DNA of 64,000 nt from Amoeboaphelidium protococcarum X5 (Eukaryota; Fungi; Aphelidiomycota). The stretch covers positions 68,908-132,907 of the forward strand of contig JALDTO010000207.1 of NCBI GenBank assembly GCA_023515725.1. Direction: 5' to 3'. Both the position numbers and the translations under genes were made by a program. Positions 40,925 to 61,384 of this stretch are shown here, in pieces (the first letter of the stretch is position 1; every line of letters begins with the position of its first letter). Below the pieces are notes generated by a model. It was not told the origin of the DNA. It saw nothing but the letters and a program-made list of their open reading frames with translations, and did no database searches.

Positions 40925-41551
40925 TTTTATTATTTAGAGTGATATATGTTTTGTTGAAGATATTTATATAACAAAAGAAGAAAGGGATAGAGATGATGAA
41001 CAGCTTAAGAGCATTAGAGCAGGTATTGTATTTTTAGTAACATCTCATTCTAAATGCGGAGCAACTGATGCTAAAACGAGAGCATCTACTTACGTGTGAT
41101 CTATTAATAGACAAGATATTGATCAATGTTGAGTATAGAGAAGTATAGAGAAATAAGATGGAAAGTCGTGATGGAATAATATAGTCTTGTCTTGCAAATA
41201 TAGAGTCAAATGGCAAGAATACGCTGAATGTCTTGAAATAAAGAGTCACTAAGTCCAATATGCCTAAAAAGTCAAGAGTCCTCCTAAGACAAAAGCCGAT
41301 ATTTAATAATAGTGTTGATAAAAGCACGTAATGCTTGACCAAATTAAGTCACTTGGAGAGCTGAAACAAAGACCTTGGTAGAACATTATCGACATTGACG
41401 CGCATTTCAATTTATGGCTTGTCCGCAAAGGGGCGATCGCTGATCAGAAAGATCACCATGTAGAAACGGATAGAAACTTGGCGAAAGTGTTTATGAATAA
41501 AGTCCTTCCTCTTTGAAATAATCTCATTCACACCAAGAATAAACGTATGAA

Positions 41552-43162
41552 ATGGAAATAGTGGCAAATTAAGTTTACAAAAAGATAATCACATTGGCTA
41601 AATCTGATAAAGCGCCTCAGCCAGGTGATGAAGTACGCGTGCTGTACGTTGGTAAATTAGAGGGCAGTGAAGAGGTGTTTGATTCCAGCTAGAACCGTGA
41701 TTCTCCATTCAAATTCACTCTGGGCACAAAGCAAGTCATTCAAGGATGGGAGGAGGCAGTGGCCACAATGAAGGTGGGAGAGAAGAGCCAATTTACTATC
41801 AAGCCCGATTATGGATATGGCGCGAATGGTGCTCCGCCTACCATTCCGGGTAATGCGACTTTAGTGTTTGATATCGAGTTACTCGGCTTCAGAGGTGCTA
41901 ATGATCTTACTGATGATGGGCAAGTAAAGCTAGTGATTACAGAAAAGTGTAACGATGAATGGCGACATGCACGCGATGGGTGGGAGAGCAAATTATTGTT
42001 AGATGGAGGCGCGGAGAAGGTTGTCAAAGTCAATGATGAGTTGTAGCCTCTAGGTGAATAGAAAGAAGCTTACTTGTGGTCTCTGGTGGCGAAAAAGTTG
42101 AAACGCGGTGAGTAAGCACAGTTGATTATTGAGGCTGGATACATTAATGAGGGATAGGAAGCACTTAACATATAGGTTGAATGCTTGCAGATTGTGGAAA
42201 TTGATGATGTATTAGAGTCTGAGTTTGATGGTCAGTATAAAAATCTAGTTTATCGAAAGATTTTGCAGGAAGGTGACAAGTATGACCGTCCAAAGGAAGG
42301 GCACAGTGCTACTCTCTAATTGACTGCCTTTGCTGTTAAGTCTGATGGCGTTGAAGAGGTTGAGTTGTATCGCGATGATGCTCCTCGTTCAGTGCAATTG
42401 GGTAGTGGCCAGTTACCAGAAGCTGTAGAGTTTGCGTTGTTGAAGATGAAGCGTGGTGAATTGGCTGAAGTAACTTCTCCACTCTCTTTTGGGTGGGGCA
42501 CATCGCAGTTGAAAGATTCCATTTAAATTCCAAGTGACGCGTTGACTTTAAAGTTTATGGTGTAACTTGTTGATTTTGAAGAGGAGAAGAATCTGTGGAA
42601 GATGGAAGCTGCTGATAAAATTGAGCATGCTACTTTATTAAAGAATTATGGTAATCATCAGTTTAAAGATGGAAAGTTTCGACTTGCTGTGAAGTATTAC
42701 TCCAAAGTGCTTGACGTGTTGAAGGCGGATAAGAAAAAGCTGGAGGAGGACTCTGCAGTGAAAGATATAGTTGTGGCTCTGCAATAATCTGTCCATCTGA
42801 ACCTGGCTGCTTGCTATCTGAAGTTTGAAGATTATTTGCAGGTGATTGAGAAATGTGAAAATGCTTTGAAGTTGAATTTAGATCCTGCACAGCGTTGTAA
42901 AGCTCTGTACAGACGCGCTCAGGCGTATTTTATGCGATAAGAGTATGATGAGGCTCGTCGTGACTGTATGACGATCTTGAAAGTGGATGCAGAGAACATT
43001 GACGGCAAGCGCTTGCTAAGCAATGTGAACTTGAAGATGAAAGCCCTGATAAGTAAGCAGAGAGCCGTGTTTGGCAACTTATTTAAGAAGGTGAGTTTGA
43101 CTGACGATACTGAAGTTGTTAAATCGGACAAGGAGAATTATTTCGGAGTTGTTGGATAATGA
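41552..43162 (+). CDS. Multi-domain FKBP-type PPIase with TPR domain (FKBP4/5- or ROF1-like, 536 aa)
   Basis: [51 protein letters not shown], further degenerate FKBP domains, [31 protein letters not shown]. Confidence 0.92.
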
Positions 43163-43280
43163 ATCAGTTTTGGATTTGTATCCTCTTTATTGTCTACACG
43201 TTTAAATCAAGTTTTAACTCTTAAACTGCTTTATTTTTGAGTATCTTTTTCACTTCTACGATCTCTCCTAGAGTCCCTAT

Positions 43281-54493: not shown

Positions 54494-55185
54494 TTGGAGC
54501 TGTAATCAAAAGAGTTTTAGTTTGATGTATTGTAAGGTAATATAACTCTCAACTGTGAATGGCCTTAAAATGTAACATGTTGAAAACGCATAGTCATCAA
54601 TTAGTGTGTTGCGATGCGTTTATTAATAGCACTGGAGTTCGCCAACAGCGGAGCTTGTAGCTTGTAGCTTTTGCTCAGCTCGGCTAGCTGTTTCTAATAA
54701 ACGGTATCAATTGCACGTGTATATAGTGGGAAAAAAACAAAGTAAAATAACAACACCAAGCATATAAAGAAAGAAATCATAATTTCAGCTAATTTTATGA
54801 GTGAAGCCTTTGCAAGCAGTTAAAAATACTGACCAAATAAATATACAGGGACAACAAATAATCAAATACTTTTCAAAATCAAAACGTAAAAAACATTGCA
54901 ATTTGCTTGATGCACAGGCATAACATATTGGATAGGTACCTTATTTTTGTTTAGAGAGCTGCTCTGCCAATTTATCGCCCGGCGAGACTTTTGTCGTTTC
55001 TCGAGAAGAGGCGCGACGAAAGCTTGGCAGCAGGACCTTGGAAGGAGTTGAACCCATCCGCTCTTGTAATCATATTAGAGAACCATGTCTTCCAACAACA
55101 ACAAAAAAAAACTTCTTGTTGACCTAACTTAACTTTAGATGATTATATAGAACCAAGTATGTAGTCAAAAAAGCAAAAAGAATTG

Positions 55186-55258
55186 GAGCGCCTAGTGGAT
55201 TCGAACCAATGACCTTCGGATTATGAGACCGACGCCCTAGCCGCTGGGCGAAGGCGCT
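55186..55258 (-). tRNA. tRNA-Met (CAT), elongator-like
   Basis: Cloverleaf with acceptor stem AGCGCCT/AGGCGCT, anticodon arm TCGGT-CTCATAA-TCCGA and GGTTCGAATCC B-box; downstream T-runs serve as a Pol III terminator. Confidence 0.93.
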
Positions 55259-55272
55259 GAGTAAATACTGAA

Positions 55273-55509
55273 TGTTACAGTCGTGCAGACTGATCAATGA
55301 TCTTTGCCTATTGTGGCTGAGCAACGTTCCCACGCCTCCTCAAGATTATACAATCAAGTTCTCACGATAGATGAGATCCATCTCTTTTGATCATCGTGTT
55401 AATATAGTATTCAACTTATTTACACGTTTTTACCTTGCTTGTCTGGTTAGATCCTGTATAGTCAGTCTAAGTTCCCCTGTCTAGTATATCAAGTAGTCCC
55501 GATCTAACA
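55273..55509 (+). repeat. 5' LTR
   Basis: Direct repeat of 60199-60435 with TG..CA ends. Confidence 0.97.
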
Positions 55510-55510
55510 C

Positions 55511-55520
55511 TTAACACGAT
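55511..55520 (+). other. Putative self-priming primer-binding site
   Basis: TTAACACGAT is the reverse complement of ATCGTGTTAA at 55393-55402 inside the LTR. No TGG-initiated tRNA primer site is present. Confidence 0.75.
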
Positions 55521-55531
55521 CCATAAGTATC

Positions 55532-56503
55532 ATGTCTGACTTCCGTGCCACAACACCTGAAGGTGTAAATGCCGAAATGTTGCATGCGTTGCATAATGCT
55601 CAGGTTCACAACGAGTAGTTATAACAATAGATTGCTGCATATGAAAATTAGCGTTTGTCCACTCCAGCCCAAGTTCCAGTGTCAGTAGAGTAAAATTCAG
55701 TCATCTTGCCTTCCAAGTACAATGGTGAGCGTGAACTGTTCCGTGGGTTCAGAAATTAGTTAACCATCCTGTTTAAAATCCATCCTTAAAGGTACAAGAG
55801 CGACGAGATTAAAATTATGACCGTCATATCTTTGCTGTCCGGTAATGCCTTGTAATGGGTCAATCCAATACTAGAACATCCGAGTAAATATCCAGATACT
55901 TTGGCCAATTATGACAGGTTTATGAGCGCGTTAGCTGCTGCATTCTAGCCTATTGAGCAAATGGCAATTGCTGGGAATCGAATTAAGCTATTGAAGCAAC
56001 TGAAGAAGACTGCATCTGTATACTCTACTGAATTTTTAAGTCTTGCTTCCGACTTAGATTGGAATGATTCTGCACTAATGTTCTAGTACAAGGATGGGTT
56101 ATCTTATCAGGTTAAGAAGATGTTATTAGGATACCCAGAACCAAGCAAATTGCAAGAGTTGATAGACTTATCCATCAGATGTGACTAACGTCTGTCTTTG
56201 TTTCATGCTGCAAATGGCAGAGTTGTCAATAATCAATTATTCCAGAATATCGCTAATAATCGCATTCCGTAATTTGGTCCTGCTAATAATCATCAAGTTG
56301 TTCCAGCTGCAGTTCCAGTCAACAATCCAGATGCTATGGAGATAGATCAAATTCAACGTGGTAGATTGTCGCCAGAAGAGAGAGCCCGTAGAATCGCCAA
56401 TAATTTGTGCATCGTCTGTGGTTAGACTGGTCATTGGAGACGTGACTGCCCATTAGCTGTTCGTAACCGTCCAGCGCGCCGTGCATAAGTCAATGAGCAA
56501 TGA
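55532..56503 (+). CDS. gag: Retrotransposon Gag with CCHC zinc knuckle
   Basis: LPSKYNGER, LSGNALQW, YSTEF..LDWNDSAL..YKDGL, AMEID, CIVCGQTGHWRRDC. Ends at TGA 56501-56503. Confidence 0.93.
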
Positions 56504-59500
56504 CAGTTAGTTAATGAAGATGATAATGGTATTGAAGTAATATTGAATCTGAACTCAATTTCATCTTGCAAAATTCAACTTAACAGTACAATCCTTATTG
56601 GCACATAATCAATCAAGGCTATACTTCTACTGGATTGTGGTGCTGATGTCTGTTTCGTCAGCCAGAAGTTGGTGGATACTTACAAGATTCCAGTGGTTCA
56701 ATTGAAGTAGTCCATTACTGTCAAGTTTGCCGATGGCAACGAGGATCATTGCACCAAGATTATCCATCAAACTACACCCTTATAGTTGCATATTGGTGAA
56801 CATATTGAAACGATTACCTTCCTGGTGACTTAATTGTCATAAGATATCATTCTTGGCATGTCTTGGCTGAAGCAACATAATCCGCTGATTGATTGGATCT
56901 AAGAGAAGGTAACATTTAACTCTGATTTCTGCGTTATCAACTGCGTTGTTCATGAAACTTCTGTCTATAGTAATGCTTAGTCCTCTTCTAGTGTCAGATT
57001 GGAATAAGAGTCTTTAAAATAACCTGCTCCAAAGGTCTCTTTCAATCTGAATTCTATGGTCTAATCCAATAATATAGAGATGGCAGACAGTCATCTTGCC
57101 ATCTTATCTAATGTTGATTCATCTACACAAACAGAATAATAGCTAAAAGAAATTAATTCACCTAGTTCTGCTTCTTCAGCTACTGCAGTTAAAGTTTCTA
57201 CTGAGATTCAAGTGGATGTTTCAGAAATTCAGTCGTTGGTCGAAGAAGAGAAGCGTTCCATTGTTCTGGAGATTGATGATCTTTACACTCAGATGCGTGA
57301 TATCTCTGAAGTTCCGAATAATACTGATCATGTTAATTAAGAGTTGCCAAAGTAAATAGCTGATTATTAAACTGTGTTTGACAAGAAGATGGCTGATTAA
57401 TTGCCGCCTCATCGCGCGTCTGATTGTACTATTGATTTAAAGCCTGGCCCTGAACCATTCTTTGGTAAAGTCTATAGTCTGACTAAAGAGGAAGATTTTG
57501 CCTTGAAGGAATGGTTGTAAAGTAATATTGATAAAGGTTTCATTCGTCCAAGTAAAAGTCCATTTGGTGCACCTTGTTTTTACGTGAAGAAGCCTGACTG
57601 GACTGGAGATAAGAAGTTACGTCTGTGTATGGACTATCGTGCATTAAATAAGAATACAATTAAGAATAAGAATCCAATGCCTTTAGTATCTGATATATTT
57701 AGAACGCTGCAAAAAGCTAAGATGTTTACTACTTTGGATTTGGTTGGTGCATACAATTTATTGAGAATAAAGGAAGGCCATGAATTTAAGAGTGCATTTC
57801 GAACTAAGTATGGTTCATATGAGTTTTTGGTTATGCCTTTTGGACTTGCAAATGCTCCTGCTCAGTTTCAGACTTTTATGAATGAACTGTTGAAAGACTA
57901 GATTGGAAATTTTGTCATTGTGTTCATTGATGACATTATTATCTATTCAGACAATGAAGATGAGCACTGGTAACACGTCCGTGAAGTTTTGGAGATCTTA
58001 AGATAGAATAATCTTTACTGTAATATTGCCAAGTGTCACTTTGCATAGCGAGAATGTAAGTATTTGGGTTATGTTCTTTCAAAGGATGGGTTGTCAATGG
58101 ACTTGCGTAAAGTTGAAGCTGTTTTGAAGTGGCCAAATCCAAAGAACGTGAATGAAGTGTAAATGCTGCTTGGTTTTCTTAACTTTTACAGAAGACTTAT
58201 TAAGAACTTTGCTAAATTGACCATGCCATTCACTCTGCTGCTGAAAAAAGATGTTCAATTCTGTTGGGGAGAAGAGTAGAAGGCTGCATTAGAGTAGATG
58301 AAGAAAGTTTTTGCTGATCCTCAATTTCTCATGCATCCGAATGAAGAGAAGCCATTTATTGTTGAAACTGACTCGTCTGATTTTGCCATCGCTGGTGTTT
58401 TGTCTTAATATGATGAAAATGGTGAATTGCGTCCTGTTGCGTTCTATTCTCGTCAAATGATTCCTGCTGAGCGTAATTATGAGATTTACGATAAAGAATT
58501 GCTAGCTATTCATGAATGCTTTAAAGAATGGAGACACTTTTTGTAAGGTGCTGATCATCAAGTCACTGTTTTGTCTGATCACAAGAATCTGCAATACTTT
58601 ATGGAAACAAAGTAGTTAACGCGTCGTCAAGCTCGTTGGGCTACATTCTTTGCAGAGTTCGACTTCGTTCTTACATATCGTCCTGGAAATAGAAATGGCA
58701 AAGCTGATATACTATCTAGAAGGCCCGACTATTACGTTGAAAATGATAAGGCTAATTTCTTGCGCATTATTGATCCTAATCAAGTAGTTAACGCGTTATC
58801 ATTGGCTGTTTTTGGTTCAGTTGATCAAACGGTGACTATTTAAGAAATTGAGACTGTGAATTAACTAGATTGGCCTCTTTATGTAAAGAAATGGCTAGTT
58901 TCTGGCGAATGGAAAGCAGATTTGCCTGTTGAAGTTTTGTAGTTATGCAAAGATCAAACTAAACATTTCTCTCTTGATGATTCTGGTAATCTCTGCAGAA
59001 TTGCTGATGATGGAATAACTAAAAGTTGGTATTTACATCCTTCTTCTCGTCTGGAACAATTGGAAAGACTGCATGATAAGCTTGGTCATTTGAAGAACGA
59101 CTCAATTGCTGAATTGATTAAGAGAAGATACTGGTGGCCAAAGATGGATCAAGAGATTAAAGATTACATTTCTCGTTGTGCATATTGTTAACTTGATAAG
59201 TCCTAATCTACTTCTGTGTCATCCACTCCTATTAAACCAGTTCCACCTGTTGCTTTGCCCTTTGAAAGATGGGGAATTGATTTGGTATAAGATCTGAGTG
59301 AGACTAAGTCTGGTAATAAGCACATTATTACTGCAATTGATTATGCTACACGTTGGGTCATTGCTAAAGCTGTTCCAAATAGAGATGCTAAGACTGTGGC
59401 TAATTTTATTTATCATGAGATTGTAATGAATTTTGGCGCTCCTTTTGAAATTATCAGTGATCGTGGTAGTTCTTTCTTGGATGAAGGTGTTAAATACTAT

Positions 59501-60226
59501 GAGAAGAAGTGGAACATTAAGCATCTAGCTACTTCTCCTTATCATCCTTAGACCAATGGAATGATTGAACGTATGCATGCTATGTTGCGTCATGCTATTG
59601 CTACTCTAGCTGCTGGTAATCCTTCTCGTTGGGATGAATATTTGGCAGAAGCTGTATTTGGTATTCGCGTCAGAACTCATGCAGTTACTAAGTCATCTCC
59701 ATTTTATCTCATGTTTGGAGTAAATCCAAGAATTCCTGGTGATACTCACCCACCATTGTCATCTATGAAGCCACTGGATGAATTGGAAGAGATTGAAGTA
59801 GAAGGTGCAATTATGGCTAGAACCTTCGAAGAAATGGGTAATGCTAGACGCGCTGCTTATGAACGCTCGTTGACTCAAGCTGAATTGATGCGTAAAAGAT
59901 ATAATTTGGATCATAATGCTCCTGAGTATTTCTTCAAGGTTGGTGATTGGGTGAAGTTGAAGCATTATGGCAAGAGTAAATTTGAGTTCAATTGGAAAGG
60001 CCCTTACAGTGTGGTAGATGTTGGGTTTCCTGGTACGTATTGGCTAATGACTCCGGCTGGCTTGCGTCTTGACTCTGTTGTTAATGAATCTGATTTGGCT
60101 CCTTGGCTTTAACCAACTGTTAATAATGAATCCTTCTTCTATGATGGTACTACAAGAAGAACTAATGCTTTACGTCAAGGTTTTGGAGAGGGAGATAGTG
60201 TTACAGTCGTGCAGACTGATCAATGA
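56504..60226 (+). CDS. pol: Retrotransposon Pol (PR-RT-RNase H-IN), in frame with gag after a TGA
   Basis: PR LLDCGA and ILGMSWL..NPLIDW; [21 protein letters not shown]; RH ETDSSD, DKELLAI; IN H..GH..CAYC, GIDL, SDRG, GMIER and a GPY motif. No ATG of its own at the start; the stop lies inside the 3' LTR. Confidence 0.93.
60185..60198 (+). other. Polypurine tract
   Basis: GGAGAGGGAGATAG directly precedes the 3' LTR. Confidence 0.85.
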
Positions 60227-60435
60227 TCTTTGCCTATTGTGGCTGAGCAACGTTCCCACGCCTCCTCAAGATTATACAATCAAGTTCTCACGATAGATGA
60301 GATCCATCTCTTTTGATCATCGTGTTAATATAGTATTCAACTTATTTACACGTTTTTACCTTGCTTGTCTGGTTAGATCCTGTATAGTCAGTCTAAGTTC
60401 CCCTGTCTAGTATATCAAGTAGTCCCGATCTAACA
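60199..60435 (+). repeat. 3' LTR
   Basis: Direct repeat of 55273-55509. Confidence 0.97.
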
Positions 60436-61384
60436 TGAAAACTGCTCACTATGCTAAATATATAGCAATTGAACAAAACGCTTGGTAATTTGACACTCTA
60501 AAAATGATATCTATTCTCTGCAATAGCATGTCGAGTAGGCTTGTATCATTTGAATTGAAAAAGTCTTACTTTAATTACGATCTGATCGATGAGAAACCAT
60601 TTCAGTTCAGTAATATTTTTGTGTTACGAATTCCTTTTTGGTGGCGTGTAGTCAATCTTCCGCGATTGTTGATCTATAGAAAGTTCACAATGGCTTTGAC
60701 ACAGTCCACGCAGTTCTCTTAGATGTCTAAATTAATTTTATAAGACTAGACACTTAATAAATGCCGGTGATCAACAATCGAAATAGCTTGCTAGCTGTAT
60801 CAACGCAGAACTCTCCATGAGCCTTGAAGGCGGACCCATCGCGTCATGCGAACAGACTTGCAACTACTGTGTTAGTCCAGTTTGATGGGCAGATGTGCTG
60901 GTGGTTAAATGGCTTATTGCAAAGAACACCATCTTTGTATAGGCAAAATGACTGTCCTTTTGTAAACTATTCTTCAGTTCAGATATAGTCTGTATCAGGC
61001 CCAGTTAACACCACTCTTCCTACTGCTCAGTTAGATTCTGTTGATCCGCCGTAGAAGAAGGCCAAGGTGGAAGAGGAGTTGGATCGCTTGTCTCAACCAG
61101 TTGTAAGTTGAAGAGGTACTCGTTACTGAAAGTTTCGCGAGAGAGTAGAAGCATTGATGGGCGAAGATAGAACTGTTAAGCAATTGATGTGGATTGGACA
61201 AGGGTGATCATCAACACACTCATTAACGGGGATAGTCAATGGTTGCTCCTGTTGGGTATGGCGAAAGTCAAATATATATCTAAAGATGGAGACAATAATC
61301 ACGGCTTGTTGCTTGAAAATTCTATTTAAAAGCTGCAGTTAAGTACGTAATATTATTTGCCACAATTACTAGAATATAATCAAT

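Follow-up and report, generated by a model that had tools for sequence, protein, structure and literature searches.

Stop codon readthrough between gag and pol is established for the type C retroviruses and for several long terminal repeat (LTR) retrotransposons (bioRxiv 10.1101/2022.12.06.519325). The fission yeast Ty3/Gypsy elements Tj1, Tcry1 and Tosmo1-3 share a strictly conserved GAA-TGA-CT gag-pol junction (bioRxiv 10.1101/2022.12.06.519325), and for Tj1 from Schizosaccharomyces japonicus transposition is abolished when the stop is removed and gag and pol are fused (PMC4600332; bioRxiv 10.1101/2022.12.06.519325). Tj1 is 5,003 bp in length with LTRs of 244 bp, primes itself and targets tRNA genes (PMC4600332; bioRxiv 10.1101/2022.12.06.519325), and gammaretrovirus readthrough has been cited as the model for it (PMC4600332). 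The element described here is a Ty3/Gypsy LTR retrotransposon located in a 64,000-nucleotide stretch, referred to as the window, of contig JALDTO010000207.1 (positions 68,908 to 132,907) from the aphelid Amoeboaphelidium protococcarum X5, and its gag and pol genes occupy one frame divided by a single TGA. Reassignment of UAR (UAA and UAG) to glutamine has been published for this aphelid (PMC5304391), and a literature search found no published account of programmed UGA readthrough in a eukaryote with one stop codon. Sequence comparison of the window element with its relatives indicates that the Gag-Pol protein is made by programmed UGA readthrough, a reading to which a probability of about 0.8 is assigned.

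A single in-frame TGA between gag and pol

Two open reading frames (ORFs) bounded by TGA codons, 55391-56503 and 56504-60226, lie in one frame with only the TGA at 56501-56503 between them, as had been stated in an earlier annotation of the window (the original prediction). The same annotation held that pol has no start codon of its own, and this is borne out for the window element because no in-frame ATG occurs in pol before codon 119, well past the protease motif at codon 44. There are 52 in-frame TAA and TAG codons within the window gag-pol. Glutamine is the commonest residue found in standard-code relatives at these positions (64 cells, against a background glutamine frequency of 3.4%), and the pattern of residues matches that seen in the same comparison at the CAA and CAG codons of the element itself. 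The host reads UAA and UAG as glutamine and has UGA as the sole stop codon. With TGA taken as the only stop, long ORFs are densely packed in the window, which has a G+C content of ~40%. Pfam and database searches were run on stop-free pieces of the translations since the tools take TAA and TAG for stops.

Two side observations concern the genetic code and the arrangement of ORFs. A tRNA gene with the anticodon CTA, labeled 'Pyl' by ARAGORN, is located at L035:2456-2529 on the minus strand, at the locus of another copy of the element, and is probably a tRNA-Gln that decodes UAG in the host. Elsewhere in the window, at 41528-43249 on the minus strand, two TGA-bounded ORFs of 287 codons each also lie in one frame with a single TGA between them; this pair is placed opposite a plus-strand ORF of 572 codons, and the two are probably shadow ORFs.

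The TGA-C junction in four element families

A search of the 23.6-Mb assembly gave nine copies with a readable junction, and these fall into four families. The junction is CAA TGA CAG TTA in the window element and L040, GAA TGA CGT TTG in L033 and L034, GGA TGA CTA ACT in L035 and L036, and GGG TGA CTC TCG in L037, L038 and L039. TGA followed by C is present in all nine copies and none has a sense codon at this position. In every family the gag ORF ends in TGA and pol continues in the same frame with zero gap. The three further families have 68-75% nucleotide identity to the window element in pol. In protein alignments, where the TGA was entered as X, it occupies a single column between the conserved zinc-knuckle tail and the N terminus of the protease.

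The divergence among the families is substantial. Synonymous sites are saturated between the deeper lineages (window, L033 and L035/L037), with a proportion of differences of 0.68-0.80, and identities between these lineages are 34-59% in Gag and 56-65% in Pol. The L035 and L037 families form a closer pair with 75% identity in Gag and 86% in Pol, and over the first 40 codons of pol the non-synonymous proportion between them is 0.25 compared with 0.75 for the synonymous proportion. This deficit of non-synonymous differences indicates that the stretch directly after the TGA is translated in the pol frame. The retention of TGA-C through saturated synonymous sites and the purifying selection following the TGA lend strong support to programmed UGA readthrough, which was the central claim of the original prediction.

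The second full copy of the window family, L040 on contig C146, is 99.6% identical to the window element, differing from it by 19 substitutions and by a 1-nucleotide insertion in each LTR, and keeps TGA-CAG-TTA. L040 is bounded by an identical LTR pair and by a target duplication of its own, and a different tRNA gene is its neighbor; 4-bp target duplications also flank the other copies. As the two near-identical copies, each with identical LTRs, are placed at different tRNA genes, the TGA-bearing form itself has transposed. The TGA could instead be a chance nonsense mutation in a dead copy, with an ancestor in which gag and pol formed one fused ORF, and fused arrangements without the TGA do occur in L057 of the same genome and in the outside relatives L069 and L070. 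Such an origin is hardly credible for a TGA that is found at the same alignment column in every copy of four deeply diverged families, and that is carried by two separate insertions with identical LTRs.

L057 (G000:C290:312-2818) represents a fifth, distant Ty3/Gypsy family with 25 in-frame TAA or TAG codons, read as glutamine. Its gag and pol form a single open frame that runs from the zinc knuckle into the protease without a TGA, in an incomplete element on a short contig. Another reverse transcriptase-bearing element outside the four families is represented by L045 (G000:C154:198338-202000) and L046, and has an open frame of >1221 codons with an RVT_1 match. Among the copies belonging to the four families, L034 is without an LTR pair, and two tandem LTRs are present at the 3' end of the element on contig C249 (L036:6797-7399).

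Stop codon context and the proposed readthrough

Contexts described as leaky in the literature include the tobacco mosaic virus (TMV)-type stop-CARYYA signal and the UGA-C or UGA-CU(A) contexts of Sindbis virus and of fungal and animal peroxisomal isoforms. The base at position +4, directly after the TGA, was counted in host genes for comparison with the gag junctions. For the ORFs of at least 200 codons in the window (n = 34) it is A in 16, T in 14, G in 2 and C in 2, and for ORFs of at least 250 codons in the window together with the flanks of the other loci (n = 46) it is A in 15, T in 20, G in 9 and C in 2. The earlier statement that host stops are mostly TGA-A or TGA-T and that TGA-C is rare is thus confirmed. 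In the four families pol terminates in TGA-T or TGA-G and never in TGA-C. The hypergeometric chance of C at four of four gag junctions is ~6.5e-5 (calculated by hand, with the four related families counted as independent). TGA-C is therefore scarce where termination is tight and fixed at the gag junctions, where a leak would be wanted, a distribution expected if it is avoided in the one setting and kept in the other.

As judged from sequence, the determinant shared across the four families is UGA with C at +4. The four diverged families keep UGA-C and differ after the C, and the host genes avoid UGA-C, which suggests that C at +4 still weakens termination by a host release factor that no longer recognizes UAA and UAG. 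In the proposed mechanism most of the ribosomes on the full-length RNA would halt at the gag UGA and yield Gag. The UGA-C tetranucleotide would be a poor termination signal, so that a minority of ribosomes would decode the UGA with a near-cognate tRNA and proceed in the same frame to give a Gag-Pol fusion. The flanking CAA and CAG-UUA codons may help the leak in the window family. The protease would then free itself, the reverse transcriptase/RNase H and the integrase from Gag-Pol, and the leak rate would set the Gag:Pol ratio. We infer the occurrence of readthrough and its frequency, and likewise the amino acid inserted. For gene callers applied to the A. protococcarum genome the consequence would be that gag and pol are to be joined across the TGA and that the TGA-C junctions of these elements are not to be taken as gene ends.

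Evidence against readthrough and alternative decoding

Several observations weigh against programmed readthrough. The TMV-type context put forward in the original prediction is exact in the window family (CAA-TGA-CAG-TTA), but CARYYA is absent from the three sister families, so alignment of the genomic copies upholds TGA-C throughout and CARYYA in the window family only. No stable RNA structure is found in the 130 nucleotides after the TGA in any of the four families (z-scores of +0.84, -1.14, 0.00 and +0.26 relative to shuffled controls), and a readthrough signal would therefore have to be provided by local context alone. The sample of host stop contexts is small (46 ORFs). L033, the copy of the second family on contig C207, has identical LTRs and a frameshift within gag (L033:2594-2960), and is thus not intact, being either a defective copy or the product of an assembly indel. 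In the L035 and L037 families an in-frame ATG is placed 17 codons past the TGA and before the protease motif, and internal initiation is therefore a possibility for those two families.

This ATG would fit a scheme in which UGA always terminates and pol is expressed from an intron-spliced or subgenomic RNA or by internal initiation or re-initiation. As a general explanation the scheme is unlikely. The window and L033 families have no in-frame ATG in pol until after the protease active site. Coding constraint abuts the TGA on both sides, and the sequences flanking it differ from family to family with no shared GT...AG pair when read by eye. Moreover, pol directly continues the gag frame in every case, and a separate message would make no such demand. 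A termination-reinitiation event at the junction was considered on its own and rejected, as the ATG overlapping the stop (A-TGA) is in a different frame from pol.

It is also conceivable that internal UGA codons are efficiently read as sense, with UGA acting as a stop only near the mRNA 3' end in the manner of Condylostoma, and two stop codons have already been reassigned in this host. Gag and Pol would in that case be made as one polyprotein, and Gag would not be in excess. This is quite improbable. The TGA-bounded ORFs of the window are long and clean, reaching 1182 codons without an internal TGA, whereas each element contains exactly one internal TGA and always at the gag/pol boundary. A polyprotein without excess Gag is also at odds with the inactivity of Tj1 when its gag and pol are fused. 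Nor is there a sign of dedicated decoding: no match to a tRNA-Sec gene is found in the 23.6-Mb assembly, and an Rfam search of 55000-60700 with E values up to 1 matched only the neighboring tRNA, with no selenocysteine insertion sequence (SECIS) and no other match in the element. Selenocysteine insertion at the UGA was rejected on the same two grounds. Programmed readthrough of the UGA-C junction remains the preferred reading.

Structure of the window element

The coordinates of the element and its features are collected in Table 1. The window element is a recently active Ty3/Gypsy LTR retrotransposon, with 5' and 3' LTRs that are 100% identical and the hallmarks of such elements in the form of paired TG...CA LTRs, a target-site duplication and a polypurine tract, the last of which is alike in the other three families. 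The order gag(CCHC)-protease-reverse transcriptase-RNase H-integrase, as defined by Pfam matches and motifs, corresponds to the Ty3/Gypsy layout, and Ty3_capsid and zf-CCHC domains are found in the gag proteins of relatives. The gag ATG is located 23 nucleotides past the 5' LTR, and the pol terminator TGA at 60224-60226 falls within the 3' LTR.

The protease active site of the window element is D-C-G-A in place of the usual D-S/T-G-A, and the sister families have DSGA. The DCGA variant is also present in the closest outside relative, L067, and on this basis is probably functional.

Table 1. Features of the window element and its immediate flanks (positions in the window)
Feature	Position	Strand	Basis or remark
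tRNA-Met(CAT) gene	55185-55258	-	ARAGORN; Rfam tRNA 56.8 bits
Target-site duplication TGAA, 4 bp	55269-55272 (left), 60436-60439 (right)	+	flank reading
Ty3/Gypsy LTR retrotransposon, intact	55273-60435	+	5,163 bp
5' LTR, 237 nucleotides, TGTTA...AACA	55273-55509	+	repeat search, sequence
LTR-internal 10-mer ATCGTGTTAA	55393-55402	+	complementary to primer-binding site; sequence
Primer-binding site TTAACACGAT	55511-55520	+	no tRNA 3'-end complement (no TGG)
gag, 323 codons + TGA	55532-56503	+	ORF translation with TGA as only stop
CCHC zinc knuckle of gag	56408-56449	+	motif
Candidate recoding site CAA-TGA-CAG-TTA	56498-56509	+	TGA 56501-56503, +4 C at 56504
pol, 1240 codons + TGA-T terminator	56504-60226	+	ORF translation
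Protease motif LLLDCGAD	56624-56647	+	motif
Reverse transcriptase, RVT_1	57521-57898	+	Pfam; FIDD motif at 57923-57934
RNase H, RT_RNaseH_2	58409-58543	+	Pfam
Integrase zinc domain, Integrase_H2C2	58943-59188	+	Pfam
Integrase core, rve	59291-59548	+	Pfam
Polypurine tract GGAGAGGGAGATAG	60185-60198	+	directly 5' of 3' LTR; sequence
3' LTR, 237 nucleotides	60199-60435	+	repeat search, sequence

Priming and integration at RNA polymerase III genes

The primer-binding site, TTAACACG(A/T)T, is complementary to the LTR-internal 10-mer in all four families. At the variable position the pair is A:T in two families, and a compensatory swap makes it T:A in the remaining two. The 10-mer is located ~40 nucleotides 3' of a TATA-like box, and no TGG-type tRNA primer site is found in the element. 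It is probable from this arrangement that the 10-mer forms the 5' end of the transcript and acts as a self-primer, as in Tf1 and Tj1.

An LTR end is placed 13-36 bp from the 5' end of a mature tRNA at seven of the nine loci (window, L034, L035, L036, L038, L039 and L040), the neighboring tRNAs of these seven being Met, Glu, Gln, Lys, Gly, Pro and Gly. In the window the distance from the 5' end of the tRNA-Met(CAT) gene to the 5' LTR is 14 bp, and this gene is likely to be the RNA polymerase III (Pol III) target of the integration. L037 adjoins a 5S rRNA gene (L037:7404-7525), which lies 2 nucleotides from its 3' LTR. Both orientations of the element relative to the tRNA gene occur. At several loci a single Pol III gene is accompanied by multiple insertions or by a solo LTR.

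Relatives outside the host and origin of the UGA junction

A search with the C-terminal 186-amino acid integrase piece of the window element gave 3,508 relatives. Five of these, L067, L068, L071, L073 and L074, are from metagenomic contigs and one NCBI assembly contig and have 46-69% identity to the query. In a quick maximum-likelihood Pol tree, for which support was calculated as the Shimodaira-Hasegawa-like approximate likelihood ratio test (SH-aLRT) only, the four TGA families form one clade (SH-aLRT 99) with P0002 as its sister and metagenomic elements around them. The five outgroups resemble the window element in domain order and have homologous gag C termini with the same zinc knuckle and basic tail. 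They differ from it in that their hosts use the standard code and their pol overlaps the 3' end of gag in the -1 frame. The slippery heptamer is G GGA AAC in L068 and in L073, A AAA AAC in L071 and U UUA AAU in L074, with a downstream stem-loop in L073 and L074. The sister L067 also has a -1 frame and a downstream stem-loop, with no clear slippery heptamer. A -1 offset is indicated for P0043 and P0059 from gene coordinates alone. According to the original prediction, frameshifting or a single ORF is found in most Ty3/Gypsy elements; this is true of these nearest relatives but leaves out the readthrough cases Tj1, Tcry1 and Tosmo1-3.

L070, a close relative on a JGI metagenome contig, has an in-frame TGA (L070:3960-4075) where the window element has the tryptophan of PFER-W-G. 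Either TGG has mutated to TGA there, or the host of L070 reads TGA as tryptophan.

As the nearest outside relatives have pol in the -1 frame or fused to gag, the in-frame UGA is derived in the host lineage and has been kept since, and the frameshifting of these relatives implies that the clade records a switch of recoding mechanism. One conceivable cause is that reassignment of UAA and UAG to glutamine erased any UAA or UAG terminator of gag, so that the junction had to be re-formed with the sole remaining stop and -1 frameshifting was dropped for UGA-C readthrough. This is a tentative and rather doubtful proposal. If it is true, a change in the genetic code of the host has reshaped the recoding signal of a retroelement, and the four families, differing past UGA-C, form a natural panel for termination fidelity in a eukaryote with one stop codon. 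The claim in the original prediction that the readthrough is adapted to a one-stop-codon genome goes too far, as UGA-C readthrough also serves hosts with the standard code and the -1 frameshifting of the nearest relatives is the only related evidence.

Comparison with known recoding systems

The window element closely resembles Tj1 in several respects. At 5,163 bp with LTRs of 237 bp it is similar in size, its gag ends in an in-frame TGA with a pol that has no AUG of its own, its primer-binding site is complementary to a site internal to the LTR, and insertion occurs just 5' of tRNA and 5S genes. The junction GAA-TGA-CT of Tj1, Tcry1 and Tosmo1-3 compares with CAA-TGA-CA, GAA-TGA-CG, GGA-TGA-CT and GGG-TGA-CT in the families described here. 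Differences are also apparent. UGA is the only stop in the present host; the distance between insertions and the mature tRNA 5' end is 13-36 bp, compared with 5-11 bp in Tj1; both orientations occur whereas that of Tj1 is fixed; and target duplications have 4 bp where those of Tj1 have 5 bp. No chromodomain match is found in the C-terminal 186-amino acid integrase piece, and the last 38 amino acids are too short to hold one. Since the nearest relatives found use -1 frameshifting, the UGA junction may have arisen independently of that in Tj1.

The arrangement is also that of the gammaretroviruses typified by murine leukemia virus (MLV), with gag and pol in one frame and one stop between them. 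Pol of these viruses is produced solely as part of a Gag-Pol fusion and in low proportion, as would be the case here. MLV uses a UAG stop with a downstream pseudoknot, in contrast with the UGA and the lack of stable structure in the 130 nucleotides folded here. With respect to short-context signals, the window family has the exact CAA-stop-CAR-YYA of the TMV type and the L035/L036 family has UGA-CUA of the UGA-CU(A) type, with UGA-C common to all of the families. The plants, yeasts and animals in which these signals were defined, like the viruses of these hosts, have three stop codons, whereas the host here recognizes UGA only. The readthrough mechanism is known from Tj1-type elements and gammaretroviruses, and what the window element and its sisters would add is scope and not principle, in the form of a eukaryote with one stop codon for which comparison supports programmed UGA readthrough.

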